A stretch of DNA of 59,567 bases from Macrostomum lignano (Eukaryota), in contig NIVC01004119.1 in the NCBI GenBank assembly GCA_002269645.1, forward strand, positions 1-59,567, given 5' to 3'. How positions within the stretch are numbered: the first letter of the stretch is position 1; the number at the start of each line of letters is the position of its first letter. This document shows, in pieces, positions 8,387 through 58,974 of this stretch. Position numbers and translations under genes: made by a program. The notes beneath the pieces were generated by a model, which saw only the letters and a program-made list of their open reading frames with translations, had not been told where the DNA came from and did not search any database.

Positions 8387-9606
8387 GTTGTAGTGTCTCC
8401 GTTGATGCAGTGTTCCTACATAGTGTTGTAGTGTCTCCGTTGATGCAGTGTTCCTACATAGTGTTGTAGTGTCTCCATTGATGCAGTGTTCCTACAGTGT
8501 TGTAGTGTCTCCGTTGATGCAGTGTTCCTACATAGTGTTGTAGTGTCTCCGTTGATGCAGTGTTCCTACATAGTGTTGTAGTGTCTCCATTGATGCAGTG
8601 TTCCTACATAGTGTTGTAGTGTCTCCATTGATGCAGTGTTCCTACAGTGTTGTAGTGTCTCCGTTGATGCAGTGTTCCTACATAGTGTTGTAGTGTCTCC
8701 ATTGATGTAGTGTTCCTACATAGTGTTGTAGTGTCTCCGTTGATGCAGTGTTCCTACATAGTGTTGTAGTGTCTCCATTGATGCAGTGTTCCTACATAGT
8801 GTTGTAGTGTCTCCATTGATGCAGTGTTCCTACAGTGTTGTAGTGTCTCCGTTGATGCAGTGTTCCTACATAGTGTTGTAGTGTCTCCATTGATGTAGTG
8901 TTCCTACATAGTGTTGTAGTGTCTCCATTGATGCAGTGTTCCTACATAGTGTTGTAGTGTCTCCATTGATGCAGTGTTCCTACAGTGTTGTAGTGTCTCC
9001 GTTGATGCAGTGTTCCTACATAGTGTTGTAGTGTCTCCATTGATGTAGTGTTTCTACGTAAGCGTTGTAGTGTCTCCGTTGATGCAGTGTTCCTACATAG
9101 TGTTGTAGTGTCTCCATTGATGCAGTGTTCCTACATAGTGTTGTAGTGTCTCCATTGATGCAGTGTTCCTACATAGTGTTGTAGTGTCTCCGTTGATGCA
9201 GTGTTCCTACATAGTGTTGTAGTGTCTCCGTTGATGCAGTGTTCCTACATAGTGTTGTAGTGTCTCCGTTGATGCAGTGTTCCTACATAGTGTTGTAGTG
9301 TCTCCGTTGATGCAGTGTTCCTACATAGTGTTGTAGTGTCTCCGTTGATGCAGTGTTCCTACATAGTGTTGTAGTGTCTCCGTTGATGCAGTGTTCCTAC
9401 AGTGTTGTAGTGTCTCCGTTGATGCAGTGTTCCTACATAGTGTTGTAGTGTCTCCGTTGATGCAGTGTTCCTACATAGTGTTGTAGTGTCTCCGTTGATG
9501 CAGTGTTCCTACATAGTGTTGTAGTGTCTCCATTGATGCAGTGTTCCTACATAGTGTTGTAGTGTCTCCGTTGATGCAGTGTTCCTACATAGTGTTGTAG
9601 TGTCTC
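8387..9606. repeat. 38-bp minisatellite (agtgttgtagtgtctccRttgatgcagtgttcctacat), about 32 copies
   Basis: Period measured at 8401/8439; some 36-bp variants. Confidence 0.97.
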
Positions 9607-11248
9607 TGTTTTTGGCGAAAATTCGCTTGGTCCCTCCCCTCTTTGATTTTTTTTCGGTCCCCCGCCCCCCCCCCTGGTTGCGCCACTGGCTGCGACCGCT
9701 GATTCTTTGTTTTGTTTTTCTGTTTTCAGATCCTACAGACAATGCATTGTTTGTAGTAATGGATTGTTCTGCATTAAAAATGTGAATAATGATCGTCAAA
9801 TTGCTAAACAATGCTTTTAAACGAGCCTCATACTTTTTTCGCCATGAATCGGCTCGTTTCCGGTCCTGAGTTATCAAGTTGTCCTTGGTTTTAGTGTCTC
9901 CATTATGGTAAACACTATATTGTCTTCATTATTGTAAAATCGTCTATGGTAAAGACACACAAAAGGCCTGACTAGCATGGCATTGCAAGGTCATCAGGCT
10001 ATGAACAATTAAAGCTTAAACTGCGAACTGCACAGGAGTGTATTCTACTGGCCAATCCTCCACTCCGCCTCTTCTGTACATTTTTTTCCAGAACGAAGCG
10101 CACTTTAACTATTTTTTTGAACAGACCAAAGTCCGGAGAAACGGGTCAAACTTAATCTTTTTTCTCGATTTTTTTTATAATTTTAAAATAATCAGTAAAA
10201 ATTTTGCTCTTGCACGTGCTTCTTATCTCAGTTCTTGAGCATTGGTGCAGCAATACCGGTTGCTACCAGTTGATGCCAGGGGAGGCAAAGCCGCCGCAGG
10301 TAATTTTTTAAAAAGTGGTTTGTGATTTTTTTATTAGCGGTTTTGCCTTTATCAGAGCGCGGGGTTACCCAATAAAGAAACGGTGGCTATAGAGGTGTTC
10401 AAAGGCAACTATTGAACACGAGAATAGCATTGCTCAATTCGATCGTCATTGGAAAGGCGGCGAATTGCATTGTCACTTGTAATTTATGGCAATAGCTGCT
10501 ATTCGTTTGATGGCTCAAGAGATTTAGCTTAAAAACACATTAACTATATTTTTCTAATCACTAAAATAGGCCCTTTCTCATGGCTCGTGCCAGAGACAGG
10601 ATTTTGTTCTGGGGAGGGGGGTCAGCCAACCCACTTGACCCCCATCCTGGATCCGCGAGTGAGTTCAAGCTTCGAGCTACGAAAGGGCAAACGAAACATT
10701 TTTCTGTTTTCCAGAATGGTCATACATGTACACCCCCCCCCCCGAATTCTCTCGGGAATGGGGGGTTCAGACGACCCCTTGAACCCCTGGATCCGTTATT
10801 GCATGCAAAGTTGGCACATATCCACATTCCTAGTGGAGTCGGATAGGGGTTGGGGGGAAAATTTATTCAAGTGTTGCAATTCTTTTAATTGGCACTAATT
10901 AGATGACGAGGCGTTTTCGTATTGTAAGACTGTTAAGTTACTCCTACTGTTTACCTACAACAATACATTAGTGGGATAATGAACACAGTGGAATATTGGA
11001 AATGCATCGGCAATTCAAAATAAATAACTATACACTTCATGTTGATAATGACTTTTATTTATTTACTTTTCATTGAGCGAGTGAGCGAGTTACTTTACCA
11101 GACCTATATTTAGTTGCCAAGCATTCTTGTTTTAACCAGTTGGCCAAGGAGGTCAAAGGTTGACATCGACATTGCTCTGAGTTGTGCTATTTTCAGCGAT
11201 TTTATAATACTGTCATTCTAAAATGGTTTTCTCTCTGTCACATGAAAT

Positions 11249-16724: not shown

Positions 16725-19700
16725 ATGCTGAAGAAGTCACTTGGCGGCGTCTCTTATCGTCGCCTGTTTGACCGGGTCAGCGAGCTGCCCGTCCCCCTGC
16801 TGCCCGGCGGCAGTTGGCGACGCCTGCGCAATGTCGGCGCCGCTCTGGCCAAGCTGGAGGTCGGTCCGCAAGAGCCGGGGCCCGGCGGCTTCAGGGAGCG
16901 GCACCTGCCGCTGGCCAAGGCGTCGCTAGTCCGTCTGCTGTGCAAAGAGGCCGCCGTGAGCTCGGCCGGTCAGCAGGCCGGTTTTCAAAACTTGGCCGCT
17001 TCGCTTGACCACGCTCTGGTGGGGCAGTTCTACGGCACTCTGAGGGAGCTGCGGTGAGCAACTGTGGATCTGTGGCCCAGCAACTGAGGATCTGGGAGGC
17101 TGGCCCAGCAACTGAGGATCTGGGAGGCTGGCCCAGCAACTGAGGATCTGGGAGGCTGGCCCAGCAACTGAGGATCTGGGAGGCTGGCCCAGCAATTGAG
17201 GATCTGGGAGGCTGGCCCAGCAACTGAGGATCTGGGAGGCTGGCCCAGCAATTGAGGATCTGGGAGGCTGGCCCAGCAACTGAGGATCTGGGAGGCTGGC
17301 CCAGCAATTGAGGATCTGGGAGGCTGGCCCAGCAATTGAGGATCTGGGAGGCTGGCCCAGCAACTGAGGATCTGGGAGGCTGGCCCAGCAATTGAGGATC
17401 TGGGAGGCTGGCCCAGCAATTGAGGATCTGGGAGGCTGGCCCAGCAACTGAGGATCTGGGAGGCTAGCTTAGCAACTGAGGATCTGAGAGGCTGGCCCAT
17501 CAACTGAGGATCTGGGAGGCTGGCCCAGCAATTGAGGATCTGTGGCCCAGCAATTGAGGATCTGGGAGGCTGGCCCAGCAATTGAGGATCTGTGGCCCAG
17601 CAATTGAGGATCTGGGAGGCTGGCCCAGCAATTGAGGATCTGGGAGGCTGGCCCAGCAACTGAGGATCTGGGAGGCTAGCTTAGCAATTGAGGATCTGGG
17701 AGGCTGGCCCAGCAACTGAGGATCTGGGAGGCTGGCCCAGCCACTGAGGATCTGGGAGGCTGGATCAGCCACTGAGGATCTGGGAGGCTGGATCAGCCAC
17801 TGAGGATCTGGGAGGCTGGCCCAGCCACTGAGGATCTGGGAGGCTGGCCCAGCCACTGAGGATCTGGGAGACTGGATCAGCCACTGAGGATCTGGGAGGC
17901 TGGCCCAGTCACTGAGGATCTGGGAGGCTGGCCCAGTCACTGAGGATCTGGGAGGCTGGCCCAGTCACTGAGGATCTGGGAGGCTGGCCCAGTCACTGAG
18001 GATCTGGGAGGCTGGCCCAGTCACTGAGGATCTGGGAGTGCCCGTCACCCATTCCTTAATCGATATGTCTCGCCCTCCCGCAGCGACCTGTTCGCCCCGC
18101 TGAACCCAGACGACGACACGCCGACCAATCAGATGCCGCGCAGAGCCCGACTGGACGCAGAATTTGACTTCCTGCGCCGCCTGGCCGCCGTGCTGGAGGC
18201 CGGCAATTTTCGCGAATTGGGCAGCGCTCAGGTGGCCAGGGCGCTCAGCCTGCACAAGTCCAGGGCCGGCGTGCAGGTGACTTGAAATTATGCTGGAGTT
18301 TAAATAGTTACAGTGCTGTCCTGCTGCCATCCCCGTTCTGCACCTGTTATTTTCTCTTCCCTGTGCTCCCACTCTCTTCCCCTGTGCTCCCACTCTCTTT
18401 CCATCATTTCCTTGTGCTCCCAGTCTCTTCCCATCATTCCCCTGCGCTCCCAGTCTCTTCCCATCATTACCCTGTGCTCCCAGTCTCTTCCCATCATTAC
18501 CCTGTGCTCCCAGTCTCTTCCCATCATTCCCCTGTGCTCCCAGTCTCTTCCCATCATTCCCATGTGCTCCCAGTCTCTCCATCTCACCTAGTCTTCCTTA
18601 CTGTACGTCTTTTCCTGAATTCTTTACAATGCAAATCTTTTATTATATGTACAGTGTCTTCCCAGCCAATCCAAAGGACCATAACTGTCATTTTGCGCTG
18701 CTCCAACCTCTGCATCCAAGGTGGGCGTGGACCTGTCCAAATACGACGTACTCCGCGTGTGGGTCATCGGCCAGACTGAGGCGCCTAAAGCCGCTGCCAC
18801 CGGCCTACTGGGGCGGGCTCGGTCTGTGCTGATGAGCGGAGGCCGCCGCGGTGGCGCTGGAGAGCCGCAGCTGTACCAGCGTCTGGTGCTGGCCGTCAGA
18901 CTCAAGCAGAGCGATCGGCTGAGCGTTAAAATGTTTAAAAACGTGGACGCCAGCGAGATTGACATGCTGCTGCCTGAGGGTGAGGCGCTTTCACTTGCTG
19001 TGATGCACCAGGAATTCGGGATGCGAGATCTGTGGATTACGGAACTGAATCTTTGTGTTTAGGGTTCAAATCTGGGGATTATAGATCAGGATCTTCGGAT
19101 GCAAGATCAAGATCTTGTGATTAAAGGTTAAGATCTTGGGATTAAAAATCAAGATCTTGGGATTAAATATCAAGATCTTGTGATTAAATATCAAGATCTC
19201 GGGATTAAAGATCAAGATCTTGTGATTAAAGATTAAGATCTTGGGATTAAAGATCAAGATCTCAGGATTAAAGATTAAGATCTTGTGATTAAAGATTAAG
19301 ATCTTGGGATTAAAGATCAAGATCTCAGGATTAAAGATTAAGATCTTGTGATTAAAGATTAAGATCTTGGGATTAAAGATCAAGATCTCAGGATTAAAGA
19401 TTAAGATCTTGTGATTAAAGATTAAGATCTTGGGATTAAAGATCAAGATCTCAGGATTAAAGATTAAGATCTTGTGATTAAAGATTAAGATCTTGGGATT
19501 AAAGATCAAGATCTCAGGATTAAAGATTAAGATCTTGGGATTAAAGATTAAGATCTTGGGATAAAGATTAATATCTTGGGATTAAGAATTTCAAGAATTC
19601 GGTATTAGGGATCACAAAATCTCTTGTCATTTCACATATCTGGGGGTTAGTTTTTTCCAATTCTACTACTATCTACAAGTAGTACAATTGGATTCTTAAA

Positions 19701-22340: not shown

Positions 22341-22794
22341 ATTAGACTATAATTAATAAATGTTAGTTCCAGTGGCCTTCATTCTTTTTGAGAAATCAGA
22401 AGAAATATGAATATATTAATCTATACATTGGTTAGTCCGTTATTGAATTTTTATCGTGCTCAAATGTACTTGCACTTTGTAGGAAATGCCCTTTCGCCTT
22501 GCGCTTAGAACAGAACCACTCTGTCATGCAATTTAATTTATCAGATAGTTCCCATAATAAATTATTAGATCTAATAGGCTTTAGTTTCATATATCCTTAG
22601 TCCTTATATATATAATATGCCAGCTTGATTACAAAGTTGCAACCGGTTCAAAAAGCCAGAGAAATACACGCGCCCATGGTGAACTTATTGATTATTCAAC
22701 TAACGTTGATCTTCTACTGTAAGTAGTTAATTTTTTATCTAAATGACATTTCGTTTGTTCAAATGTTTATTTTAAAACTTTGAACTATTAAAGA

Positions 22795-23680
22795 ATCGCC
22801 CCTTATGACCCTGTAGAATGGCCCCTTATGACCCTGTAGAATGGCCCCTTATGACCCTGTAGAATGACCCCTTATGACCCTGTAGAATGGCCCTTATAAC
22901 CCTGTAAAATCGCCCCTTATGACCCTGTAGAATGGCCCTTATGACCCTGTAGAATGGCCCTTATGACCCTGTAAAATCGCCCCTTATGACCCTGTAGAAT
23001 GGCCCTTATGACCCTGTAGAATGGCCCTTATGACCCTGTAAAATCGCCCCTTATGACCCTGTAGAATGGCCCTTATGACCCTGTAGAATGGCCCTTATGA
23101 CCCTGTAAAATCGCCCCTTATGACCCTGTAGAATGGCCCCTTATGACCCTGTAGAATGGCCCCTTATGACCCTGTAGAATGGCCCCTTATGACCCTGTAG
23201 AATGGCCCCTTATGACCCTTTAGAATGGCCCCTTATGACCCTGTAGAATGGCCCCTTATGAACCTGTAGAATGGCCCCTTATGACCCTGTAGAATGGCCC
23301 CTTATGAACCTGTAGAATGGCCCCTTATGAACCTGTAGAATGGCCCCTTATGAACCTGTAGAATGGCCCTTTATGACCCTGCAGAACCTGTAGAATGACC
23401 CTTATAACCCTGTAAAATCGCCCCTTATGACCCTGTAGAATGGCCCTTATAACCCTGTAAAATCGCCCCTTATGACCCTGTAGAATGGCCCTTATAACCC
23501 TGTAAAATCGCCCCTTATGACCCTGTAGAATGGCTTTTATGACCCTGTAAAATCGCCCCTTATGACCCTGTAGAATGGCTTTTATGACCCTGTAAAATCG
23601 CCCCTTATGAACCTGCAGAATCGCCTAGTTTGAACCTGTAGAATCGCGCCCTATGACCCTGTAGAATCATATTTTATGAC
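22795..23680. repeat. 22-23-bp minisatellite (ccttatgaccctgtagaatggcc)
   Basis: Direct reading; interspersed aaaatcgcc variants. Confidence 0.95.
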
Positions 23681-28066: not shown

Positions 28067-29816
28067 ATGTCAGACGACTACACACCTGAGGAGGCCAACC
28101 CGATGCATCCCGAGGAGGCCTTCCACCGGGGCATCCAGTACGAGGCCCGCTACATCGGCAGCATGGACGTGGCCAGGCCGCAGAGCCGCACAGAAATTGT
28201 TGCCGCGATGCGTCGCGTCCGATTCGAATTCAAAGCCAAGGCGGCCAAAAAGCGCAAGGTGGTCGTCGCGATCTCGTTGGACGGCGTCAGTCTGATTTTT
28301 AAACGACCGCCCAAACCCTGGCACGAGGGTTCCAGCCTGGGCGGCGGCGTCGGGCCGGGCTGCGGCCAGCTGCTCATGCACCACCCCATCTACCGGATCT
28401 TCTACGTGTCGCACGACTCGCAGGACCTGAAGATTTTCAGCTACATCGCCCGAGACAGCCATCGGAACGCGTTCAAGTGCAACGTGTTCAAAGCCGCCAA
28501 GAAGGTGCAAGCGGTGCGCATCGTGCGCACCATTGGCCAGGCCTTCGAGATCTGCCACCAGCTGTCGCTGGCATCCAAGGAGCAGCAGCAGCTGTTGCAG
28601 CAGCAGCGGTCCCAGCAGGCGGATGCTGGTAAAGCTTCATCCAAATCCGAGACAGCGGCAGCATCGGGGAAGTCGCCTCGGGAGCAGTCAAAGTCGCAGC
28701 AGTCGATGGTTTCGGTGGCCACCGAGACTTCGCCGAGCTGGGAGGAGCTCCAGCATCAGCTGATCGCTGCGGCAGCCGACGGCAGCGGTGACACCAGCGA
28801 GAGCTTTGACTGCCAGACGGCGCTCTGGCGGCGGCACAGCAGGCAACTGATGCAGCAGCAGCTGGAGCACCGGGCGCAGCAGACCCAGACCGCGCTTGCC
28901 GAAGTGCAGCTGCTTCGCGACCAGCTGGCCGCGGAGTCGGCTGCCCGGACCGAGGCTCAGTCGAGAGCGCAACGGCTGCTGGACCAGAACCGCGACCTGC
29001 TGGACCACCTCAACCAGTTGGTGCATCGGACTCGGGCCCTGGAGCTGCGCCTGCATCAGCAGCAGTTGGAGCTGCAACAGCCCAGGTAATTGAGGCACTT
29101 GACCATGTGCACCAACCCACAAGGCACAGAGTGTTGTACACGCCTGATAATGACAAAGTTGTGTTGCTGTACACCCTCTTTGTTGAGTGTGTGTCTGCGT
29201 ACGAACCCTTGTAAGTGCTCAGGTGCCAGCGGAATGGGCCTGACCATGACCCTCAGAGGTAATCTATACACTCCCTCGACATCCCCGGCCTCCCAGATGC
29301 TCCGCAGGCCAGCAGCCGCCTCACGCTTCGCTGCGAGTCCGTCCGCATCAGCAGCAGCATCCGGAGGACTCCTCTTTAGACATTGACGACAATGGCGACG
29401 TGTCGCCGGACTCCGGTCACAAGGAGATGAGTTCCGACAGTCTGTCGCAGGTGCTCAGCCTGACGCTGGAATCGGCGACCTGCCAGCAGCCGCAGCAGCA
29501 GCGAGCGGCCGCGTTGACCTCGGTGCAGCAGCGCCGGACTGTGCAGACGCCGGCGAGCCTCGACTGTCGGCGGCCGCATAGCTGGAGGTCGACGAGTGGG
29601 ACAGTCGTCTCTGCGTCCGCCTCTACCTCGGCCTCGGCCGCAACTGCTGCTGCTGCTGCTGCGGCATCGTCGGCGGCGGCAATTTCCGGTCCGGCGGCGG
29701 CCTGCTGGTCGGAGCAGTTCGCCGGTGGCGACGAGCCCGTCGGAGGAGCGTCGTCGGTCGCTGCGGCGCACTTGAACCACTCGTTCGAGTGGAACGGCGA
29801 GATTGCCGCTGACTGA
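28067..29816 (+). CDS. NOS1AP: NOS1AP/CAPON (DYC-1)-like PTB-domain adaptor
   Basis: Exons 28067-29085 and 29297-29816 (phase 2, GT-AG). The PTB domain matches CAPON closely (EIVAAMRRVRFEFKAK; PIYRIFYVSHDSQDLKIFSYIARD; AVRIVRTIGQAFEICH), followed by the CAPON coiled coil VQLLRDQLAAESAARTEAQ. Confidence 0.93.
29112..29239 (+). mobile_element. SINE-like dispersed repeat, copy 1 (in the NOS1AP intron)
   Basis: Shares ccaaccc.caaggcacag...tgtacaYgcct...gctgtacac...tgcgtac...ctcagg...gcggaatgggc with the copies at 35.8, 38.2 and 54.0 kb. Confidence 0.65.
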
Positions 29817-32420: not shown

Positions 32421-32986
32421 TTCCATCCCCTCTCCCTTCTGCATGTACTCAACTCAGCTTTCATTCCGTTCGTGCGTTGCTCCTAAAAAGCAGAACAGAG
32501 ATGAAGAGTAAACAGCCCAATTTCATCCGTCACTCGTCCATGTCAAGCGGCAAGGGTTAGGGAGCGATTAATGCTGGCCAAGCTCATGTCAACCAGGCCA
32601 ACCCCAAAGCTCCATTAGGCAGCCAACTAAGGGACAATGGCTACCCAACAGACTGTGTTCCTGCGGTATGGCCCTGTGGAGAATTGAACAAGCAATGAAA
32701 AGGAGAATTTTGACTGGCAGTGACTACTGCGTGGTCAGTTGCTTGGCTGCAGATTGTGCTCACGTATCAGTCGCATTGGTAGAATTCTTCACCTTCAATA
32801 CTGAAAAATGGACATTGGACAGCTAAAGTTAAATTGTATTAGTGAGATAGGGAGTTATCAGTTGTCTTAGCTCTCAACCAAGGCCACAGAAAGAACAGTT
32901 TTGAATATATTCGTTCAATTTGGGAATTTGGAAGCTCGGAAAGTAAAGATATTGTCAAATAAAGTTCTCCTGTGTAGGGATAAGTG

Positions 32987-33690
32987 CGCGGCAATGACTG
33001 GAGTACTCACAGGTGTGCGGCAATGACTGGAGCACTCACAGGTGTGCGGCAATGACTGGAGTACTCACAGGTGTGCGGCAATGACTGGAGCACTCACAGG
33101 TGTGCGGCAATGACTGGAGCACTCACAGGTGTGCGGCAATGACTGGAGCACTCACAGGTGTGCGGCAATGACTGGAGTACTCACAGGTGTGCGGCAATGA
33201 CTGGAGCACTCACAGGTGTGCGGCAATGACTGGAGCACTCACAGGTGTGCGGCAATGACTGGAGCACTCACAGGTGTGCGGCAATGACTGGAGTACTCAC
33301 AGGTGTGCGGCAATGACTGGAGCACTCACAGGTGTGCGGCAATGACTGGAGCACTCACAGGTGTGCGGCAATGACTGGAGCACTCACAGGTGTGCGGCAA
33401 TGACTGGAGCACTCACAGGTGTGCGGCAATGACTGGAGCACTCACAGGTGTGCGGCAATGACTGGAGCACTCACAGGTGTGCGGCAATGACTGGAGTACT
33501 CACAGGTGTGCGGCAATGACTGGAGCACTCACAGGTGTGCGGCAATGACTGGAGCACTCACAGGTGTGCGGCAATGACTGGAGCACTCACAGGTGTGCGG
33601 CAATGACTGGAGCACTCACAGGTGTGCGGCAATGACTGGAGCACTCACAGGTGTGCGGCAATGACTGCATGGAGCACTCACGGGTGTGCG
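32987..33690. repeat. Near-perfect 29-bp minisatellite (gcggcaatgactggagYactcacaggtgt), about 24 copies
   Basis: Period measured at 33001/33030. Confidence 0.97.
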
Positions 33691-34464
33691 GGAATGGTCT
33701 AGTCAATCGACAATATCTAGCATTGTTAAAACGCGTTAACAAACTCAGGTCATATTGATTGTGAAATCAGCTGTTTGTATGTCGAGAGCGGTGAGATTAG
33801 AAAGACAGTGGCGCAGGGTGGAGCCATGCGGGCAGTCAGTCGGGCGCATTAAACAAATTGCCTATTGCTGTCCTTCGTCAGGTCTTCTGTTATTTTTGCA
33901 TCTAAGAATGGCTTCTGGGAGTGGCATCAGGAGATCTGCTGTGAGCGCTTTTAGTCGACAGAAATGTTCCTCAAAAATTGGATTGAGCCAGGGCACAGTG
34001 AGTGTAAACCTTGTATGACTGAGAAATTAAGGGCATCCGTGGAGGTGACTTGCCTTTTTTGCAATCAGATGGTCATCAAGCATGAAATGCTTTAATGCTT
34101 TCTCCTAATTTCATCCAAGAAAAATCCTGCTTCCTGATCAGATCCAGCCCTCCTCCTCCGACAAGCCCGCCCCGCATTCAGTTCCTCAGCCCATTGTGCG
34201 GCTACCACACTAAAGAATGAAAATATCAAAACTGTAGTCAACATGAATGAAGTGACATTTTTGGAGCAAGCTTTCCCAACTGTCCGGGAGACCAAGTATT
34301 GTAGGTGGATGGCAGATAACACGGGCCACTGCCTGAGATCTGCTCCTCGAGGGCAGCGGTGACGGGAAACTAGGGGGGTAAGTGGGCTTCCAGGATGCGA
34401 AGTTACTTAAGCAGACAGTTGCAGCGAGAAGGGATAGGGGAAAGGGATGAGTCACTCGCTTTTC

Positions 34465-37508: not shown

Positions 37509-40815
<3,307 letters not shown>

Positions 40816-42382: not shown

Positions 42383-45257
42383 TCAGCGATTCTGCTTGCG
42401 AAACTTTGCACGTCGGTTTTTGAACCAAACCTGAAAGGAAGTAAATAGTGCTGATTCTATTGGTCTCTTTCAGTTGTGGTGTTGGTGTCTATCTGGTAAA
42501 TTGGGATTCTAATGGATATGGTGGCACCACAAACCATCAGGTTAGGCTTGGCGACACAAACCATCAGGGTTGGCGCCACAAACCATCAGGGTTGGCGCCA
42601 CAAACCATCAGGGTTGGCGACACAAACCATCAGGGTTGGCGACACAAACCATCAGGGTTGGCGACACAAACCATCAGGGTTGGCGACACAAACCATCAGG
42701 GTTGGCGACACAAACCATCAGTGTTGGCGCCACAAACCATCAGGGTTGGCGCCACAAACCATCAGGGTTGGCACCACAAACCAGGGTTGGCGCCACAAAC
42801 CATCAAGTTAGAGTTGGCGCCACAAACCATCGGGTTAGAGTTGGCGCCAAAAGCCATCAGGTTAGGGTTGGCGCCAAAAGCCATCAAGTCAGAGTTGGCG
42901 CCACAAACAATCAGGTTAGGATTGGCGCCACAAACCATCAGGTTAGGGTTGGCGCCACAAGCCATCAGGTTAGGGTTGGCGCCAAAAGCCATCAAGTCAG
43001 AGTTGGCGCCACAAACAATCAGGTTAGGATTGGCGCCACAAACCATCAGGTTAGGGTTGGCGCCACAAGCCATCAGATTGGTGCTAGGCAGTGATCAGGT
43101 TGGTGCTAGGCAGTGATCAGGTTGGTGCTAGGCAGTGATCAGGTTGGTGCTAGGCAGTGATCAGGTTGGTGCTAGGCAGTGATCAGGTTGGTGCTAGGCA
43201 GTGATCAGGTTGGTGCTAGGCAGTGATCAGGTTGGTGCTAGGCAGTGATCAGGTTGGTGCTAGGCAGTGATCAGGTTGGTGCTAGGCAGTGATCAGGTTG
43301 GTGCTAGGCAGTGATCAGGTTGGTGCTAGGCAGTGATCAGGTTGGTGCTAGGCAGTGATCAGGTTGGTGCTAGGCAGTGATCAGGTTGGTGCTAGGCAGT
43401 GATCAGGTTGGTGCTAGGCAGTGATCAGGTTGGTGCTAGGCAGTGATCAGGTTGGTGCTAGGCAGTGATCAGGTTGGTGCTTGGCAGAGGCGCCACAAGC
43501 CATCAGGTAGGTGCTTGGCAGAGGCGCCACAAGCCATCAGGTTGGTGCTTGGCAGAGGCGCCACAAGCCATCAGGTTGGTGCTTGGCAGTGATCAGGTTG
43601 GTGCTAGGCAGTGGCGCCACAAACCATCAGGTTGGTGCTTGGCAGAGGCGCCACAAGCCATCAGGTTGGTGCTAGGCAGTGGCGCCACAAGCCATCAGGT
43701 TGGTGCTAGGCAGTGGCGCCACAAGCCATCAGGTTGGTGCTAGGCAGTGGCGCCACAAGCCATCAGGTTGGTGCTAGGCAGTGGCGCCACAAGCCATCAG
43801 GTTGGTGCTAGGCAGTGGCGCCACAAGCCATCAGGTTGGTGCTAGGCAGTGGCGCCACAAGCCATCAGGTTGGTGCTAGGCAGTGGCGCCACAAGCCATC
43901 AGGTTGGTGCTAGGCAGTGGCGCCACAAGCCATCAGGTTGGTGCTAGGCAGAGGCGCCACAAGCCATCAGGTTGGTGCTTGGCAGTGATCAGGTTGGTGC
44001 TAGGCAGTGGCGCCACAAACCATCAGGTTGGTGCTTGGCAGAGGCGCCACAAGCCATCAGGTTGGTGCTTGGCAGAGGCGCCACAAGCCATCAGGTTGGT
44101 GCTAGGCAGTGGCGCCACAAACCATCAGGTTGGTGCTTGGCAGAGGCGCCACAAGCCATCAGGTTGGTGCTAGGCAGTGGCGCCACAAGCCATCAGGTTG
44201 GTGCTAGGCAGTGGCGCCACAAGCCATCAGGTTGGTGCTAGGCAGTGGCGCCACAAGTTATCAGGTTGGTGCTAGGCAGTGGCGCCACAAGCCATCAGGT
44301 TGGTGCTAGGCAGTGGCGCCACAAGCCATCAGGTTGGTGCTAGGCAGTGGCGCCACAAGCCATCAGGTTGGTGCTAGGCAGTGGCGCCACAAGCCATCAG
44401 GTTGGTGCTTGGCAGTGGCGCCACAAGCCATCAGGTTGGTGCTAGGCAGTGGCGCCACAAGCCATCAGGTTGGTGCTAGGCAGTGGCGCCACAAGCCATC
44501 AGGTTGGTGCTAGGCAGTAGCGCCACAAGCCAGAAGCAGGTCGCAATTACTGTAAACATGCACTCGCCTCAACCCGTTCCTCTCGCAGCTGAATCCTGGC
44601 CGCCAGCTGCTCCCTGATGGTCACATCCGGGTAGTGGGTCAGCGCGAACAGTCGCTCCAGCTCCTCCAATTGGCGCTCACTAAATATGGTTCGATTACGT
44701 CGTCTTCGCCCGAAGCTCCGACGGTTCTGCTCTTCCATGACCTGCCGCGGCTCCGCTACTGAAAAAGATGGAGGCTGCTGCGGAGGCTGCGTCGGCAAGA
44801 TGAAAGAGCAGCGACAATCGTGATAAGCGGCAAATGCGGGCGCAATAAGTTGTTGCTGCTGCAGAAGCTGAACAAAAGTATTGCCTGTTGAACAACGTAT
44901 GGTAAATTAGCAGGTGATGTAGCTAAATCCCAACAGGTGCCGGCTTTGACCCTACAAGATCTTAGTTTAACAGGACGCATACACACACTGGCGGTAAGTA
45001 AAAGTTTCCTGATCAACAGGTGGTATGACTAAATTTAACAAGAATTGTATACGTAGTTTGTAGGTTGTATACGTAGGCTCCAACAGATTATGAGCCGCAC
45101 ACAACTCACACAGGTGCGCGCTTGTTTGATTCCGTAGTAGAGCCCGATAATTGCTGACATCTGCAGCTCCGGCAGCTCCAAGTTTGCTCGACACCGGAGT
45201 GTGCAGTATGCTGTCAATGGTGAAACTCACTGTTGAGTTGCTTCCAGCTTGGCTCAT
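42383..45257 (-). CDS. gsc: Goosecoid, K50 paired-class homeobox protein (170 aa)
   Basis: Exons 45257-45110, 44884-44568 and 42430-42383 total 513 nt in frame. The protein has an N-terminal eh1 motif (FTIDSIL), a CxC motif, and the homeodomain [47 protein letters not shown]|[12 protein letters not shown] with Lys50 and the paired-class intron position. Confidence 0.9.
42525..44530. repeat. Compound minisatellite (22-, 27-, 22- and 34-bp units) filling gsc intron 2
   Basis: Periods measured at 42601/42623, 42841/42868, 43081/43103 and 43801/43835. Confidence 0.95.
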
Positions 45258-46071: not shown

Positions 46072-47318
<1,247 letters not shown>

Positions 47319-49563
47319 TTTCTGTCTATTTTTCTGTTTTTTTCTTTTTTTATCTATTTTCTGGTATAATGATCTATCATTACCTTTCCAGCGGATTCGA
47401 TACACGAGGCTTCCAGGAGCAGTCGCGGCAAAGTCCGCATTCCTGGCAGCAGAGAAAAGGCAGAGCCGCGAGCCCGATGCGAAAGCAGTGGCAGAGCAGG
47501 CGCTGCGTCCGGCTGCAGCGCACTGAATGGCGCAGTGTGTATCGCTGCGGCCTGGTGCCGATGTCAGCACAGCCGTGGCGTCCAACGGCTCAGCGGGCTC
47601 GGTAGAAAACTCTACGACAATCGGTATTAAAGTCTATACAAGTTGACGAGTCGTTGTTACAAGTACCGTACTGCATCATAACATACCAGTCGTAACAATA
47701 ATGGTGTTTAGCTCTCACCTTGACTCTCTAAGGCTGATACAGTGGTAGCGCACGCTAGAAGCGACCAGAAGGCAACGATTTGGAGTTTTTTCATCCTGCG
47801 ATTGCAGTGCACGAGAAACAGTGTTGCTTCAATTGGAGTTTCCAAGTCAATTTGATAAGCAATGGGAAGCTGGGACCGGAGCAGCAAGTAGTTAAATAGT
47901 AATCTGACAGTCTTTTATTGCCTGATAAATACTGCGGTTGCTCAGGCAACCGGATTTTCTCCCCTCCAACCCACTGTTTCCCTCTCTCACTCACTCACTA
48001 TTTCTGCATTGGGATGGCTCTACCCTCAGTTTTCTACTTTAAGTAGCAAGTTGAGGTCGTGCCATTAACTAGTTTCTTGATCTGCATAACTTTCTTTCTG
48101 TTTTTATCAAGGATGTATCTGCAAAATATTGTTAGTTATCGGATAGGCTTTGCGCCCCAGTTTTTCAAAACGCAATATTTTTAGTTAGCACTGTTTCGAC
48201 TGCAAGATATGTAAAAGATTATGCAAAAGATGTAAATTACCGGAAAGCACAAGCCATCATAAATTTTCCACAGAAACCCAGCCTTGACTTTTCGATGTCG
48301 GTTATAAACTAGGGCTTTAAGTTAGCCAAATCGATAGTTTGCTGACAGACCTGCAAGCAGTACAGTCCGGCAAGTGTGTTTATAAATACGAACTGCAAGG
48401 GCGCAATGATAAAAGGACGGCAGGCATCCATCTCGCTGCTCAGCCAAACTACGCGCCTTACTCCGCAGCCCGCGAATTCATTCGCCCCCTCCCAGGGGAG
48501 CAGAGCCTCGGGCACTCACGCTGGTTCTTTCCCGCGCCATTTTTTTTTACGTTCGTCCATCTTTCCTTCCTGCGTTCTTTCGTTTCTATTTCCCATTTTC
48601 AGCGCTATCTCCCTCTCCACTAGGATCGCGTATTCCTAATTCCCTTTTTTCTTCTCCCGCACTCACTTTGCGTCCCGTGGAGGGCGGGGCAATATTGGCC
48701 GCATGTTCGGCACCACCTTGGCCAAAGGCTTCCGCCCGCTGCTCACACCCGGCGTGCCTGCTCGGGCCTCTCCGGCTGATTTATCTCACTATGGACCCAG
48801 TATATAGCCCCATAATTCCTCTCACCACATTCTCCCTTCCCGGTTGCCTCCCGCTCTTTCTAGGCACTTAGTCCCGGTACAATTAAGCCTTCTCTCCCGC
48901 TATCGGCTTATCTTCAACTCAACCTCCTCCTCTTAACTACCCTCGTTTTTTTTCTTCCGCAAAGCAGCGCGGCAAAGCAGCTGCACGGGCCTCTCCTTGG
49001 GCCCCGCATATTTCAGTTACCCGACGCACGTCAATAAGGCCGGGCACTTGCACGCAAAGAGCTCGCACAAGTGCATGGTAATCAGTTAGTAATCGGCACT
49101 TTGCTGCGCTCGTTTGTCTGTCTCCGAGTGTCTCTAATTAGGGCTGATTTCGAATCGCTTGTCGCAGGTTTATAGGTCTATTGCATTTATTCAGATTCAT
49201 TTGTTTTCCACTCACGCGTCGTGCAATTTTGCAGACTAAAAAGAAGCTTATACATTTGTCAACAAGGAAACTCAAGTCACGAAAACTAATAATCCACCTA
49301 TACTATATTGCGCTAAAGTGCTGGAAGTTACAATTTTTTGTCAAGGCATTACTTCCGAGCAATAGATGCAGTGCTGAGTTTAATATCTATTGGCGATTGA
49401 GCAGATGACTGGGGAGGGACAATCAATGTGTCACAGAATTCGCTTTTCTGTAATCCGCCATAGAATACGGTTCGTAACTTCTGAGGACTGATAGCGGGCT
49501 GAGCTACGAGCTATAATAAATAATCTCAACAGACGGCTTTGGTTTCCTATATAGTACGAGTAC

Positions 49564-50256: not shown

Positions 50257-53200
50257 GGCTGGTGCTCAGCCGAGTCGAAGTCGGTCAGGAGGTACCCTGG
50301 CTCGCTCGGGTACCGCCGGGCCGGCGAGCCCGCCGCAGGCTTCACAATGCCATCGCCAGGCCCGGGGCCGGGCGCCAGGTTTCCGTCGGAAGGGCCGTCC
50401 TGGTGGGCCGCTGGCAGGTCGCCGGTCTCGGCAAACGTCCTGGTCGGTCTTGGCGACTGCTGGAGCGCTGCCTCCTGCTGCCGGTGACGGTTGCTGACGA
50501 GCGATGGCGTCAGCAGGTCCAGCCGAGATCGGAGTCGTAGAGCAGTAGAGCAGCTGGCTGGGAGCTGCGCCTGTGGCCGAATGCAGCGTGTTGCGATAGG
50601 CGAGTAGGAGCTGCTGCAGAGCTCTCTGACAGTCCCGATTTCTTTAGGTGCTGCTTCAGCACCTTGACGAACCGTTCGGCTTGCCCGTTGGTCGCAGGAT
50701 GAAACGGAGCTGAAGTCACATGCTCGATGCCGTTGAGACGCAGGAACTCGCTGAATTCGGATGACGTGAACTGAGCTCCGTCGTCAGACACCGGAGTCCG
50801 AGGTAGACCCTGGCGCGCGAAGATCTCGCGAAGGCAGTTGATGGTCGCGCCTGACGTCGTGCTGGTCAGCTGCTTTACCTCCGGCCACTTACTGTGCGCG
50901 TCGATAAGCACCAGGAAGGTGCGGCCGTCGACAGGGCCAGCGAAGTCGATGTGTAGCCGGGACCACGGCTCCGATGGGAAGGGCCACGGGTGCACAGGCG
51001 CCTTGGGCGGATCGGCCTGGTTGAGCCGGCAGGTTTCGCACGCCTTGACGGAGTCCTCCACGTCCTTGTCCAGGCCGGGCCACCACACGTAGCTGCGAGC
51101 GAGCGCCCGCATGCGGCTGGCTTCAGGGTGGGCCTGGTGCAGTTCGCTGAGGACCTTCGAGCGGAGGGCGGACGGAACGATGACTCTGGACCCCCAAAGC
51201 AGGCAGCCCTGCTCGATGTTCAGCTCGTGCTGTCGGCCAGAGAACGCTTTGAGGCCCCCTGCAGCTGGGATCCGGGCGCCCGACTGCAGACACAGCAGCA
51301 CTCTGCCGAGCTGCGCGTCCGTCCGCGTCCTCTGCGAAATCACCTTTGCCGTCAGGGCCGAACCGACATCTTCGTCGATGAGGAGGCAGTTCACAGCTGG
51401 CTCCTCGATGAACTGGGTGCCGAGCGGAAGGCGAGAGAGCGAGTCGCAGTTGCCGTGCCGCGCCGTTCGTCTGAACTCCAGGCTGTAGTCGTAGCTGGAG
51501 AGCCGGATGGCCCAGCGCTGCATGCGAGCTGCGGCGTGTGCCGGGATGGCCTTGCGCTCACCAAGCAGTCCAAGTAGGTGCTGGTGGTCCGTCACGATGA
51601 CAAAGTGCCTCCCGTACAGGAACTGGTGGAACCGGTGCAGGCCGAACATGATGGCGAGCGCCTCTTCGTCCAGCTGCGCATAGTTGCGCTGAGCGGGAGT
51701 CAGGCTGCGACTCGCGAAGGCAATCGCCTGCCTCTGGCCGCCGATCTTGTGCGACAGGACCACCCCCAGACCGAATCGCGAGGCGTCGCACTCCAGGTAC
51801 AGTGACAAGTCTGGGTTGTAGTGCACGAGAGCGCCCGAGGACAGCAGCAGTTGCTTGGACTGCTCGAATGCTCGCTGCTGCGCGTCACCCCAGAACCACT
51901 TGGTGTTCTTGGTCAGCAGCTGGTTCAGCAGCTGGCGCCACTACCGCAGACAGGTGCGGCATGAACTTCGAGTAGTGGGTCAGCATGCCGAGGAAGGCGC
52001 GCAGCTGGCTAACGTCTTTTGGTGCCGGCGCGTTCTGCACCGCTGCGACCTTGTCTGGCAGAGGCTTCAGGCCATGCGCGTCGATTTGATGACCGAGGTA
52101 ATCGACGGAGTGTTGACTGAGGTACTCGACGGAGTCTTGAAAGAACAGGCACTTGGACCTGTTCAGTCGAAGGCCGGCTTCCTGGAGACGCTGCAGCACG
52201 CTGGTCAGGTTCTGTCTGTGCTGCACCTGAGTCTTGCCCGTGATGAGAATGTCGTCCACGAACAGGTGGACGCCGTCGTGGTCACCCAACAGCGTCTCCA
52301 GTGTGCGCTGAAAGATGGCGCTGGCTGATTTGATGCGGAAGGGCAGTCTGTTGAGCTGAAACAGACCTCGCGGCGTGTTGATGACCAATACCAATTAGGC
52401 CCGGCTCTCCTCGGACAGCGGCAGCTGTAGAAATGCGTTGGACAAGTCGAGCTTTGTCCACTTGCAGCCTCCGCCGAGCTTGGCGAAGATGTCCTCGATC
52501 TCGCCGTTCGCCTTCACTACCGGGACAATGGGAGCCGCCCAGTCTGAGTGCTTGATGGGCGTGATGATGCCTTGGGTCTTAAGTCGTCTCAGCTCCTCGT
52601 TCACCCGCTCCCTCAGAGCGTACGGGACCGGCCTGGCCTTGAAAAACCGCGGTGTGGCTGCTGCGTTAGGTCAGTGGTGTCAGAGCTGGTGCTGACTGAG
52701 TTGACCTGAGCCATGATTGCGTGACAGTCCAGTTTTAGTCGAGCCATCCAGTCTCGTCCTAGGAGAGGGACACTGCCCTGGGAGACCACGAGCAGCGGGA
52801 GGATTGCCTTCTGGCCATTGTGACTGACAGCGACTCTGGCTTCACCTAGCGGCTTGAACTGCTCGTTGGTGTATGTGCGTAACACCATCGCCGTTGGCTG
52901 TAGACGCAGTCCTGGGAGCCGCTCATCCGCCATTTTCTTTGGGATCAGCGTGACGGCTGATCCAGTGTCCAGCTCGAACGGGCAGTCGCGACCGTCCACC
53001 TCCAAAGTGACCGTCAAGGATCGGGACGATCGAGATCCGACGTAGAGGATCGAGCCCTGGCTGTCACTGTCCTGGTCCGACGCAGCTGCAGCGGAGTCCA
53101 GTTGCTTGACCCTGGCTGACCTGCAAACATTCTGGATGTGGCCTGTCTTCTCGCAGGCGTGGCACTTGGCATCGCGGAATTTGCAGCTTTGTCGATCGTG

Positions 53201-53874
53201 ACGGCCACCGCAGCTGGCGCACGGCTGCTGCTGGTGTGGGTGCGGCGACGCTAAGCAGCGAGTCAGGAGCTGCGGCCTCTCGTGCTTACGCGTCTGTCCG
53301 CTGCCAACATCCTTGCTGATCGCTGCGGCGGTCTCCAGTGTTCTGGGCGCGATCTCGCTCGCGTAGCGCTGCGCTGCCTCCATCGATGACACCGTCGCGA
53401 CCATCAGGGCGTAAGTCAGCTTTGAGATTTCCAGCAGCTTTGAGCGGATGGCATCGTTCCTGAGACCGAAGACGGCCTGGTCTCGCAGTCTCTCCTCCAG
53501 CGCCGTGCCGAAGTTGCAGTGCAGAGTGGCTGCCTTCAGCCCTGCCAGGAAGGTGGCGAAGTCCTCTCCCGGCAATTGCATTCTCTGCTGGAACTTGAAG
53601 CATGCGGCGATCTCGGATGGCGCGGGAGCGTAATGGTCTTGCAGAATTTTCTTTAGGCCGTCGTATGACCTTTCTGAAACCTTGTCCGGCTGACATAGGT
53701 TGCGAAGCACCGTGTAGGCGGTTTCTCCTATGGCAGTGCAAAGTGTGGCCACTTTGGTGGGCTCCTCAGTGACTTTAGCGCATACGAAGTATTGTTCGAG
53801 TCTCTCAATGTAAACTTCGAAGTCGGAGTCCCTTGATAACTCCGGAATGCGGCTAAAGGCTGAGCTCGTCGCCA
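50257..53874 (-). pseudogene. Disrupted gag-pol of the gypsy element
   Basis: Internal deletions (between protease and PRFFKARPVP; inside RT between KANGEI and EDIFAKL), a TAA at 52395-52397, a 21-nt duplication (SVEYLSQH/SVDYLGH), and frameshifts after RT and in the integrase. Confidence 0.88.
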
Positions 53875-55310: not shown

Positions 55311-55749
55311 CTATGCAACCGTTGGTCCGTCGTCAAAGACGCTGCCGAACTCGCCGCCGACGCCACCGGCAGCGCCGCCGCGCCAACTGGACGTCTGGCC
55401 GGGTCGGCAGCAGCAGCAGCAGCATCTGCACCAGCTGAGACACCAGTGACAGCACCTGGCAACTATTGAAAACTCTGCGCGTCGTTTTGCTAGAGCACAG
55501 AATGCGGCCCCCACTAGCATTATGGCGCAGCTGCCGGTGAGACTAGCAAAGCCGCTAGCCATCAGGCTGCTCGCGCTAGTACCGTCTGGTCCGAGGCCGG
55601 TGCGCACAGACAGAAGAAGCGAGGCCAGAATGAAGACGCTTAGGCCAAGCACGAATAACAGGACCGAGCCCAGCTGCCAGAGTCGCTGCTGGCATGGCAC
55701 CACGACCTGATTGGTGCCCTGGCTCTGACTCTGGCGCTGCTGCTGAGTC

Positions 55750-55780
<31 letters not shown>

Positions 55781-55841
55781 CACGTTGATCTTCGGCTTTG
55801 GTGGGGGCGTCATTGATGGAAACTGAGCACTTGCTAATCAT
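55311..55841 (-). CDS. Uncharacterised two-TM protein with poly-Gln N-terminus and Cys-rich juxtamembrane tail (176 aa from ATG 55841)
   Basis: GC-rich ORF with two hydrophobic helices (LGSVLLFVLGLSVFILASLLL; LTGSCAIMLVGAAFCALA) followed by a KRR stop-transfer and CCHWCLSWCRCCCCCC; no family recognised. Confidence 0.5.
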
Positions 55842-56324
55842 TTGAGGCCGAATTGGATTAACTCGATTTTTATAGTTAGTAAATTTCTGACTGAACTTCT
55901 TCAAAGACAGCTATAATTACTTGTAGTTCACGCGTTTTGGATCACCACGTTTCTTTTGCAGCCTCTACTCACGGCACTGGCAGCTTCCAGAAGCCCATTG
56001 CTCTGGCCAGCTCTGTATTAGGATGCAGCTAAGCTGAGACAAGCCTTCGCTGTTTTTGTCTGATATTGCCTTCTTCCAGCCTTCTTACGGGTCTATCCCC
56101 CGATTCTGATTGGCTGATCAGCCGATGTCTGCGTATGGCTGCATTTTTCTACAATAAGAGCCTAAAGACAAAAAATTCAAAGGCTCTTATAGAAAATTTC
56201 AGCTGAAAAACTGAGCTGACCAAACAGAGTAAGAAATCAACCAACAAAACATGAAATCTTTTCACCGATTTGAATGCATCTCGTCAGAAAAAGATGAGGA
56301 TTTCATTTTGTTTCCGTTTCTTTT

Positions 56325-57069: not shown

Positions 57070-58414
57070 ATGGCATCCTATCTGTGCTCATCTGCTTCCG
57101 TGCTGCTACCTTTGCTGCTGATTATATTCATAGGCAGCACTGCGGCTGCTTCAACTGGACGGAAGATTTCCTGGCGCCAAGCCAAAGGCCGGGTCAATTG
57201 CACAACTGATCGTGAGTCTTAATGTATAGCTAGGTGCTCTATCGAAATGCTATATACTAAAATAGAAAATTATTTAATTGGGTCCTTTAAAGAACCTGGA
57301 CAAAGCAGAAGCACAGAATTTCATGAAACCAAAAGCTTCCACTATAAAAATATCGCCTGTTAACTTCGGTGAAATTATGACATAAACGTTTCCATCTATT
57401 CTATTAGAGATGAGTGAATATGAATTTATTCAGTATTCATACATATTCACTCAACATTCCACAACGTAAAAGTCAAGACACCTAAAACACAAGCTATATT
57501 TAAAATCACTACATGCAGCTAACTATAAAAGGGACGCCAACTAAAGCGCCGGAACCGAAGTAAACTCTGGACTGAACCAAGCCGACCCAAATCTATTACT
57601 TCTCTGACCAGTCAACTAAAAACACTGAGAAACTACACCCCATCCGGGTGCTCTCTTTGTGCTTCCAAGTATTTACTCAGGAAGCTACTTAAGTTCTAAG
57701 TATAGACTCGTTCACACCGCCATCAAAATAAAGTCAATTTTAGCGAGATCACACGGATAATTCCACTTTTCGACGCTTTGTAGCTCGGGACATCACTGGA
57801 TTTAGTGATTTGTTCGATGTTGTGAATTAGTTTCACCAAACAATAACCTTGTCCAACCAAGCATATTGACTCATGGAACTCTACTCATTGACAGAATGAA
57901 CTCAGTAAAACAAAAATCATTATCTTATCGCCTCAAAAATTCAGCCAAGTATCTGTGCGGCCGAGTCAAATCGGTGCACGACGGCGACTCGTTGCGCATC
58001 ATCCCGGAGACGAACGACGACGGCGACAGGGCGTCAGTTCGTGTCCGCCTGATGCAGATCGACGCGCCGGAGTTGAGCCAAGCTCACGGACGAGATTCTC
58101 GCAAAGCACTGGCCAGCAGGCTGCCGCGCGGTACCCGAGTCTGCGTGATCTCACCTGGTCGGGATTACTATCATCGAATACTTGGATTTGTCTGTCTAGC
58201 TAAAGACGACATCGCCTACCGGATGCTGGCCGAAGGACACGCCTGGTGCTACCACAACACCTGCAACTTGCGGTACAAAGCAGCCACCAGCGCTGCCAGG
58301 GTCGCAGGGCTCGGTCTGTGGACGCCCGGACAGACGCCAATGGCTCCGTGGGCTTATCGTCGGTTTCAGCGGAGACGCGCCAGAAAGCACCGACAGCAAG
58401 GAAAGAAAGAATGA
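57070..58414 (+). CDS. Single-domain staphylococcal nuclease (thermonuclease) homologue with a predicted signal peptide (203 aa spliced)
   Basis: Exon 57070-57211 (MASYLCSSASVLLPLLLIIFIGSTAAA..., gtgagt donor, phase 1) joins in frame to acceptor ttcag|57945. The SNase motifs VHDGDS, RVRLMQIDAPE, RDYYHRIL, MLAEGHAW, AR...GLW and PWAYRR are all present. AATAAA lies at 58485-58490. The domain call is firm; the exon join is inferred. Confidence 0.88.
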
Positions 58415-58974
58415 GGGGCAAGAGCTGGAATGCAACTGTAGCTTTTGGGATGATGCCTTTGATTTACAGCTTCAATAATACAACAATAAAAACAATAAGG
58501 GTGATAGGAGCAATCGTGTGTCCTAATGAATTTCCATTTACCAACACGTAATATGATATATGATTATTACACACCAAATCATGTTACGCTGAAGCAGTGT
58601 CTGACACTATTTTTTCGTGCATCGTAGTGAGTCCAGTGTCCAGCAGTAAACAAACCAGCTCAATACGCTAAAAATAAAGAACTTCTAAAATTTAAAGCGC
58701 CCTATAATGTGTCTGTCTACTAAATAATGAGTTACTAAGTAGTATGTTACGCTAATGTAGACAGATAAATTACGATCGAATTTCCGTTTTTCAACGCAAT
58801 AGCATTCAAATAGCCTGACTTATTAATGATAGTATCAAACGATACTTTCTCCTTTTTTCGTTATTTTGAAAGAACGATAGGGTACTCGACGGTACGCTCG
58901 TATGAGTAAATTAAAAGGGCAGTGGCAGTACTACTAGCGTAGGGAATATGGATCGTTTCTTCTATCATTACCTC

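Follow-up and report, generated by a model that had tools for sequence, protein, structure and literature searches.

The window analysed here spans positions 1 to 59,567 of contig NIVC01004119.1 in the Macrostomum lignano assembly GCA_002269645.1, and near its end it holds a two-exon gene that belongs to transcript cluster Mlig022653 (Table 1). Exon 1 supplies a coding segment of 142 nt with one base over at 57211, directly before the GTGAGT donor, whose first base is 57212. At the other end of the intron, the acceptor AG occupies 57943-57944, in a TTCAG that is polypyrimidine-poor yet canonical. Joining at 57945 completes a split codon for Pro, C/CC, with the C taken from exon 1 and the CC from exon 2. 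The long ORF at 57866-58414 in the mechanical ORF list is in phase with exon 1 once the two are joined at this point, and the spliced reading frame encodes a protein of 203 aa in which a hydrophobic leader at the N-terminus precedes a single SNase domain. The first-pass annotation had placed exon 1, the donor, the acceptor at 57945, the stop codon, the AATAAA and an in-frame ATG from the letters, and all of these positions were found in the sequence as claimed. A scan for sigma-70 promoters and terminators was uninformative for this eukaryotic gene.

Table 1. Features of the SNase gene in the window, and its intron junctions in the three paralogue groups (slashes mark exon-intron boundaries or the predicted cleavage site)
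Feature	Position	Strand	Description or basis
Exon 1 (CDS part)	57070..57211	+	ATG at 57070, hydrophobic leader, short linker with conserved Cys (NCT); phase-1 end
Predicted signal peptide, residues 1-27 (MASYLCSSASVLLPLLLIIFIGSTAAA/S)	57070..57150	+	Cleavage site predicted only
Spliceosomal intron	57212..57944	+	733 nt, GTGAGT...TTCAG, phase 1, 37% GC
In-frame ATG	57896-57898	+	Inside intron; absent at the equivalent place in paralogues
Exon 2 (CDS part)	57945..58414	+	SNase domain, basic C-terminal tail, stop 58412-58414
SNase (thermonuclease) OB-fold domain, residues 49-185	57947..58357	+	Pfam, PDB profile alignment, AF2, Foldseek
Active-site codon D60	57980-82	+	Profile alignment to S. aureus nuclease
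Active-site codon D62	57986-88	+	Profile alignment to S. aureus nuclease
Active-site codon R82	58046-48	+	Profile alignment to S. aureus nuclease
Active-site codon D87	58061-63	+	Profile alignment to S. aureus nuclease
Active-site codon E90	58070-72	+	Profile alignment to S. aureus nuclease
Active-site codon R125	58175-77	+	Profile alignment to S. aureus nuclease
Lys/Arg-rich C-terminal tail (RFQRRRARKHRQQGKKE)	58358..58411	+	Spliced ORF; continuation of last helix in AF2 model
AATAAA poly(A) signal	58485-58490	+	71 nt past stop codon; read directly from sequence
A intron junction			TGC ACA ACT GAT C/GTGAGT...CAG/CC
B intron junction			TGC GCC ACG GCA G/GTGAGT...CAG/AG
C intron junction			TGC GAC AAC ATT A/GTGAGT...CAG/GA

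The GenBank protein BOX15_Mlig022653g4 has the identical splice junction (...RVNCTTD-P-KYLCGRV...), and a homologous phase-1 GTGAGT intron interrupts two divergent paralogues; the splice from 57211 to 57945 is therefore not a chance reading. Because the GenBank annotation of M. lignano was produced by genome-guided transcriptome assembly (StringTie/TACO with poly(A) and trans-splicing data; PMC5730564), this model is RNA-derived and not an ab initio guess. The same junction in the public model bears out the proposal that a spliceosomal intron joins a hydrophobic-leader exon to an SNase exon. It also means that exon 1 is not new to the public record: the first-pass annotation described it as missed by the ORF track, but the gene model is already present in GenBank and UniProt, the latter naming the product as an uncharacterised 'TNase-like domain-containing protein'. 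A UniProt model from an older assembly, which uses another frame for exon 1, a weak GTCAAT donor and no Met start, was judged an inferior prediction. In addition, the protein of copy g1 carries a frameshift that does not occur in the window.

To assign the protein to a family, the 203-aa sequence was scanned with Pfam, which returned a single SNase domain (PF00565; E=4.2e-12, 46.9 bits against a cut-off of 21, model positions 1-106 of 107) and no domain besides. In a PDB search, a profile of 63 family sequences matched S. aureus thermonuclease with E=5.6e-22. The family profile was required here, as single-sequence phmmer produced spurious PDB matches to designed beta-trefoils; one non-homologous member of a 90% cluster was removed from the homologue set. 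The profile alignment equates D60/D62 of the worm protein with D19/D21 of the S. aureus enzyme, R82 with R35, D87-A88-P89-E90 with D40-T41-P42-E43 and Y123/R125 with Y85/R87. These active-site residues are invariant across the 63 homologues and all three worm paralogue groups described below. The stand-alone SNase domain and the intactness of its active site, both recognised at first reading, are thus supported by the Pfam score and the alignment. The structure predicted by AlphaFold2 (AF2; pLDDT 94.5, pTM 0.88) found its best PDB matches in Foldseek among the SN domains of SND1 and staphylococcal nuclease (TM 0.65-0.79, probability 1.00), and the predicted model has the OB-fold beta-barrel and three helices of staphylococcal nuclease. 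Basic C-terminal tails similar to that of the window protein are found in paralogue B and in bacterial homologues.

By analogy with the S. aureus archetype, the product should be a small Ca2+-dependent nuclease acting on DNA and RNA, an endo-exonuclease of the staphylococcal-nuclease (thermonuclease) family. In such an enzyme Ca2+ would be held by Asp62, Asp87 and the backbone of Ala88, the attacking water would be activated by Glu90, and the phosphate would be bound and stabilised by Arg82 and Arg125.

Exhaustive phmmer searching combined with cluster look-up recovered three old paralogue lineages in M. lignano, here called A, B and C, with 46-50% identity among them. Group A is the window gene, Mlig022653; group B comprises Mlig008456, Mlig031327 and Mlig013652 (48% identity), and group C comprises Mlig018861 and Mlig002410 (46% identity). 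Groups B and C reside on other large contigs. Nucleotide similarity between the A, B and C loci is lacking in the flanks and even in the CDS, for which reason an origin as transposable-element cargo was rejected. All three groups are two-exon genes in which exon 1 encodes a hydrophobic N-terminus and the intron lies at the homologous codon, in phase 1, with a GTGAGT donor, four codons past a conserved Cys. Since the phase-1 intron and the leader exon are common to A, B and C, this architecture predates the divergence of the lineages, and from the comparison of the three we conclude that the order of leader, intron and SNase domain is ancestral to the old triplication. The fused gene of the first-pass annotation is real in this respect, but it is neither alone nor newly fused, being one of three old paralogue lineages that share the intron.

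In pairwise comparisons of A, B and C, dS is 1.3-1.55, dN is 0.50-0.55 and dN/dS is ~0.33-0.42, and all catalytic residues as well as five Cys are invariant among the three groups. The sequences indicate that purifying selection has acted on each of them since the triplication, and that each lineage has been multiplied further by recent genome duplication. The paralogues also bear on the in-frame ATG at 57896, from which a non-secreted isoform had been envisaged. This ATG is intronic, and the in-frame stretch 5' of exon 2 in groups B and C contains stops and no ATG, which argues against such an isoform; the ATG in the window is probably fortuitous.

The final ~12 kb of the window recurs in collinear order, at 98-99% identity, on a 500-kb and a 65-kb contig of M. 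lignano. Each of these carries a copy of the gene that is ~99% identical, so the locus is present on at least three contigs. A Ty3/gypsy LTR retroelement at ~50.5-53.8 kb falls within the shared flank, and the animal genes in the window encode a vitellogenin-type lipid-transfer protein (LLTP), a PTB/PID protein and a PDZ-PDZ-ZU5 protein. Large duplicated blocks and a recent genome duplication have been reported for the sequenced DV1 line (PMC5730564), and the duplicated ~12-kb flanks fit such blocks. Four substitutions separate the exons of the copies, along with a single 9-nt indel that keeps the frame and falls in the hydrophobic leader; the indels in their introns are irrelevant to the frame. 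Exon 2 has a GC content of 0.60 and a GC3 of 0.66, compared with a GC3 of 0.62-0.83 in neighbouring host ORFs, and the GC content of the intron is 0.37. The gene is physically integrated in the animal genome, among host genes and repeats and on several contigs, and it has gained the eukaryotic features of a spliceosomal intron, a poly(A) signal and host codon composition.

These observations effectively refute the reading that the SNase segment is foreign to the worm genome, as a contaminant or through misassembly, a concern that had been raised together with the original proposal. Such a reading would account for the bacterial identity of the closest outside relatives and for the fact that exon 2 alone is an uninterrupted ORF. 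However, it is contradicted by the collinear flanks, retroelement included, on at least three contigs, and by gene copies that stand beside animal genes on the 500-kb and 65-kb contigs. It is equally contradicted by a GT-AG intron whose position is conserved in three paralogues, by the host-like GC3 and AT-rich intron, by the poly(A) signal and RNA-derived annotation, and by an identity of at most ~47% to any bacterial protein.

To examine the affinity of the family, the window protein was compared exhaustively with phmmer, which gave 10,491 matches. Among the best 150, M. lignano is the only eukaryote identified, and the other entries that could be named or placed by gene context are bacterial or metagenomic. 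The same outcome was obtained for the best 120 matches of a profile search, and the databases include NCBI nr and UniRef. Most entries in these lists are unnamed, and the ~20 clusters and three loci that were checked include none that is eukaryotic. The absence from other animals is a statement about ranked lists from general databases. Where relatives have names, these are thermonuclease family, YncB or micrococcal nuclease. Identity outside M. lignano peaks at ~47%, with no single lineage emerging as the donor. Among named genomes, the nearest are those of Alcaligenaceae and other Burkholderiales (40-44% identity), and homologues at 39-41% identity occur on at least 5000 plasmid records, most of them conjugative. 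Homologues are rare in phages, and a phage origin, for which only three weak phage matches could be adduced, was rejected. Three proteins that score between the worm paralogues and the bacteria were suspected of being eukaryotic relatives; they proved to be bacterial, on gene-dense contigs adjoining QueC, and owe their high score to two thermonuclease domains that add up.

The bacterial affinity can be set against vertical inheritance, in which an ancient eukaryotic single-domain SNase would have been kept in macrostomids and lost or left unsampled in other animals. Eukaryotic single-domain SNases do exist, as the recovery of the fungal LCL3 family demonstrates. The age of the paralogues (dS>1.3) and their shared intron show that the family has long been in the lineage, and M. 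lignano was the flatworm that the search addressed specifically. However, the bit scores of the worm proteins are 95-150 against bacterial proteins but no more than 22-37 against 120 fungal LCL3 proteins, a set whose seed sequence was confirmed by its 100% match in the database. An NJ tree was built from 111 domains over 135 columns. In 172 of its 200 bootstraps the worm clade lies among bacterial sequences and apart from LCL3, which is a moderate level of support. A pairing of worm and LCL3 sequences appears in 7 of 200, and LCL3 is itself recovered as one clade in 190; the trees are distance trees (NJ) and not ML, and leave out the SNases of protists and the CAN nucleases of plants. The three worm lineages group together with moderate support (133/200 bootstraps without LCL3 and 109/200 with LCL3). 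Given these scores, the tree and the fact that M. lignano is the sole eukaryote identified in the two match lists (best 150 and best 120), we consider vertical inheritance unlikely, and the bacterial affinity asserted in the first-pass annotation holds.

Comparison with known systems places the worm protein closest to bacterial thermonucleases of the YncB/micrococcal-nuclease type, as found on the chromosomes of Pusillimonas and other Alcaligenaceae and on conjugative plasmids. These likewise consist of a ~140-residue SNase domain after an N-terminal export leader. They have in common with the worm protein the motifs HDGDS, R-L-x-x-IDAPE-x-x-Q, D-x-Y-x-R and GLW...PW; in both, a Cys immediately precedes the first strand and the chain ends in a basic tail, and identity does not exceed ~47%. 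What sets the worm gene apart from them is its spliceosomal intron, its poly(A) signal and a eukaryotic leader, together with another Cys pattern (RVC, FVC, WCY and C154) and its place in an animal chromosome as part of a multi-paralogue family. S. aureus nuclease A has the same fold, and the worm protein has equivalents of its D21, R35, D40, E43, R87 and Y85, but identity in the structural alignment is ~16%, single-sequence phmmer gives no match, and the S. aureus enzyme is without Cys.

Among eukaryotic proteins, the SN domains of Tudor-SN/SND1 (p100) share the OB-fold and are top Foldseek matches. At ~900 aa, the cytosolic and nuclear SND1 combines four SN domains with Tudor-SN5, and the catalytic set is missing from most of its SN domains. 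The worm protein, with 203 aa, a leader and a single catalytic SNase domain, does not have this arrangement of four SN domains plus Tudor. Fungal LCL3 (YGL085W) resembles the worm protein in that its only SNase domain follows a hydrophobic segment at the N-terminus, but its low scores and its separate clade speak against a close sequence relationship.

We then considered where the product might act. The Kyte-Doolittle maximum over 11 residues is 3.45, at VLLPLLLIIFI, followed by STAAA/S with small residues at -3 and -1; the n-region of the leader has no basic residue or positive charge. Paralogues B and C likewise have hydrophobic N-termini. The six Cys and the NCT sequon that the first-pass annotation had counted in the mature protein are present after the predicted leader of the spliced product. 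The short hydrophobic core followed by AAA/S, the six paralogue-conserved Cys and the likely descent from exported bacterial enzymes led us to a secretory-pathway reading, and hydrophobicity and sequence pattern suggest that the protein is probably secreted via the signal peptide of exon 1. The leader is present as had been proposed, but its outright acquisition is less clear, as the bacterial homologues start with export leaders of their own and the worm leader may therefore have been replaced or remodelled rather than purely gained.

It is also conceivable, though improbable in our estimation, that the gene is real and its product is not secreted, serving instead as a membrane-anchored protein or within the cell, for example by breaking down DNA in lysosomes or during apoptosis, or in the nucleus by way of the basic tail. 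The leader without a basic n-region and with a cleavage site that is only predicted would agree with this, as would the resemblance of the Arg/Lys-rich C-terminal tail to a nuclear localisation signal and the LCL3 proteins, in which an N-terminal hydrophobic stretch also precedes an SNase domain. However, a hydrophobic core as short as ~12 residues before AAA/S is typical of cleaved signal peptides. Six paralogue-conserved Cys, one of them in the linker, fit an oxidising compartment, exported bacterial homologues carry basic tails too, and the alternative ATG, from which a protein lacking the leader would start, has no counterpart in the paralogues.

In the secreted form that we favour, the protein would enter the secretory pathway through the exon-1 signal peptide, probably form disulfides from its six conserved Cys, and be released into an extracellular or lumenal space, possibly the gut lumen or the body surface. 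It may there degrade the DNA and RNA of prey, biofilm or debris. The six transcript-cluster IDs were absent from the supplementary tables of M. lignano studies that were consulted for the site of expression, and a literature search returned nothing relevant on this gene or on horizontal transfer (HGT) of thermonucleases in flatworms or other animals.

Taken together, we estimate a probability of about 0.68 that this is a functional nuclear gene for a secreted Ca2+-dependent SNase, of a family that was acquired by horizontal transfer from bacteria and then domesticated and duplicated. An ancient transfer from a bacterium to a flatworm is the best-supported origin, and it is unproven because the search reached other flatworms only through general databases. 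Most probably, a thermonuclease gene of proteobacterial type moved horizontally into an ancestor of M. lignano. There it would have acquired the phase-1 spliceosomal intron, along with a leader of eukaryotic type and a codon composition like that of the host, and the family would have split into three lineages long ago and been copied again by the recent genome duplication. A single transfer is favoured by the bacterial affinity, the nesting in the tree and the intron common to the three lineages. More than one acquisition is formally conceivable given the moderate support for monophyly, but the shared intron argues against it. From the age of the paralogues, the family is expected to occur in relatives of M. 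lignano. The chances appear even for a more specific version of this history, in which these are secreted nucleases restricted to the macrostomid lineage, derived from a proteobacterial and possibly plasmid-borne exported thermonuclease, that may digest the extracellular nucleic acids of diatom or biofilm food or break up the DNA-based matrices of biofilms.

Transfers from bacteria to animals that yielded working secreted enzymes are known, but their list is still short, and to our knowledge few such cases are well documented in free-living flatworms. The protein family, the mechanism and the domestication of horizontally acquired genes are all established and no new category is introduced; what is new here is the set of three old paralogue lineages with a common phase-1 intron and leader exon. 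As the intron is common to all three, domestication would date from before the old triplication. The case is a clean one, with a fully conserved active site, and M. lignano is a transgenic model in which localisation, knock-down and enzymology are feasible. If the interpretation is true, it shows how a bacterial exported nuclease was converted into an animal secretory gene, it provides flatworm biology with a candidate enzyme for digestion or for attack on biofilms, and it would represent a bacterial 'weapon' repurposed by an animal.

The nuclease gene shares its contig with a typical animal gene, one for a large lipid-transfer protein in which a single exon ORF (1816-4938) spans 1040 aa. Two further genes, encoding a PTB/PID protein and a PDZ-PDZ-ZU5 protein, have very GC-rich exons (GC3 ~0.8) surrounded by AT-rich spacers full of repeats. 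A Ty3/gypsy-type element is common to all three copies of the nuclease locus; the window copy is probably defective, since its pol region is broken into separate ORFs. A 197-aa ORF without a Pfam match, a possible gene, sits between this retroelement and the nuclease gene.

Features of the window
Feature	Position	Strand	Content
Large lipid-transfer protein gene	397-~7000	-	Vitellogenin_N, open beta-sheet, DUF1081
PTB/PID-domain gene	28067-29089	+	C-terminal part Gln-rich, coiled
PDZ-PDZ-ZU5 gene	37509-40216	-	
Long tandem arrays	8387-9610, 17073-18038, 22792-23667, 32984-33696, 43072-44532, 46073-47329 and others		
Ty3/gypsy-type LTR retrotransposon	50510-53752	-	gag/protease, RT, RNase H-integrase
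gag/protease of the element	52613-53752	-	
RT of the element	51885-52394	-	
RNase H-integrase of the element	50510-51826	-	
197-aa ORF	55311-55904	-	poly-Gln, Cys-rich stretch, hydrophobic segment

Comparison of the window with the two other contig copies of the nuclease locus (L001 and L002) revealed an in-frame 9-nt indel (LPL) at 57104-57112, within the predicted signal-peptide core, and a Y122S difference adjoining the Y123-H124-R125 active-site segment. In P0003, the GenBank protein of gene copy g1, one inserted nucleotide throws the sequence out of frame beyond ...AGLG; this copy is either decaying or affected by an indel error of the long reads. Among the best bacterial relatives, many carry two to four SNase domains in tandem within one exported protein (metagenomic P0025-P0028, P0030 and P0211-P0213), and one, P0048, is fused with ankyrin repeats in a 1044-aa protein.

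Long tandem arrays are unusually dense in the window, with 20-35 copies at periods of 20-38 nt, and further arrays consist of (TATC)315, (TCTG)99 and (TAAC)58. Because of these arrays, the ORF list of the window contains many spurious long repetitive ORFs. The density of the arrays is consistent with the repeat-rich genome described for M. lignano (PMC5730564).
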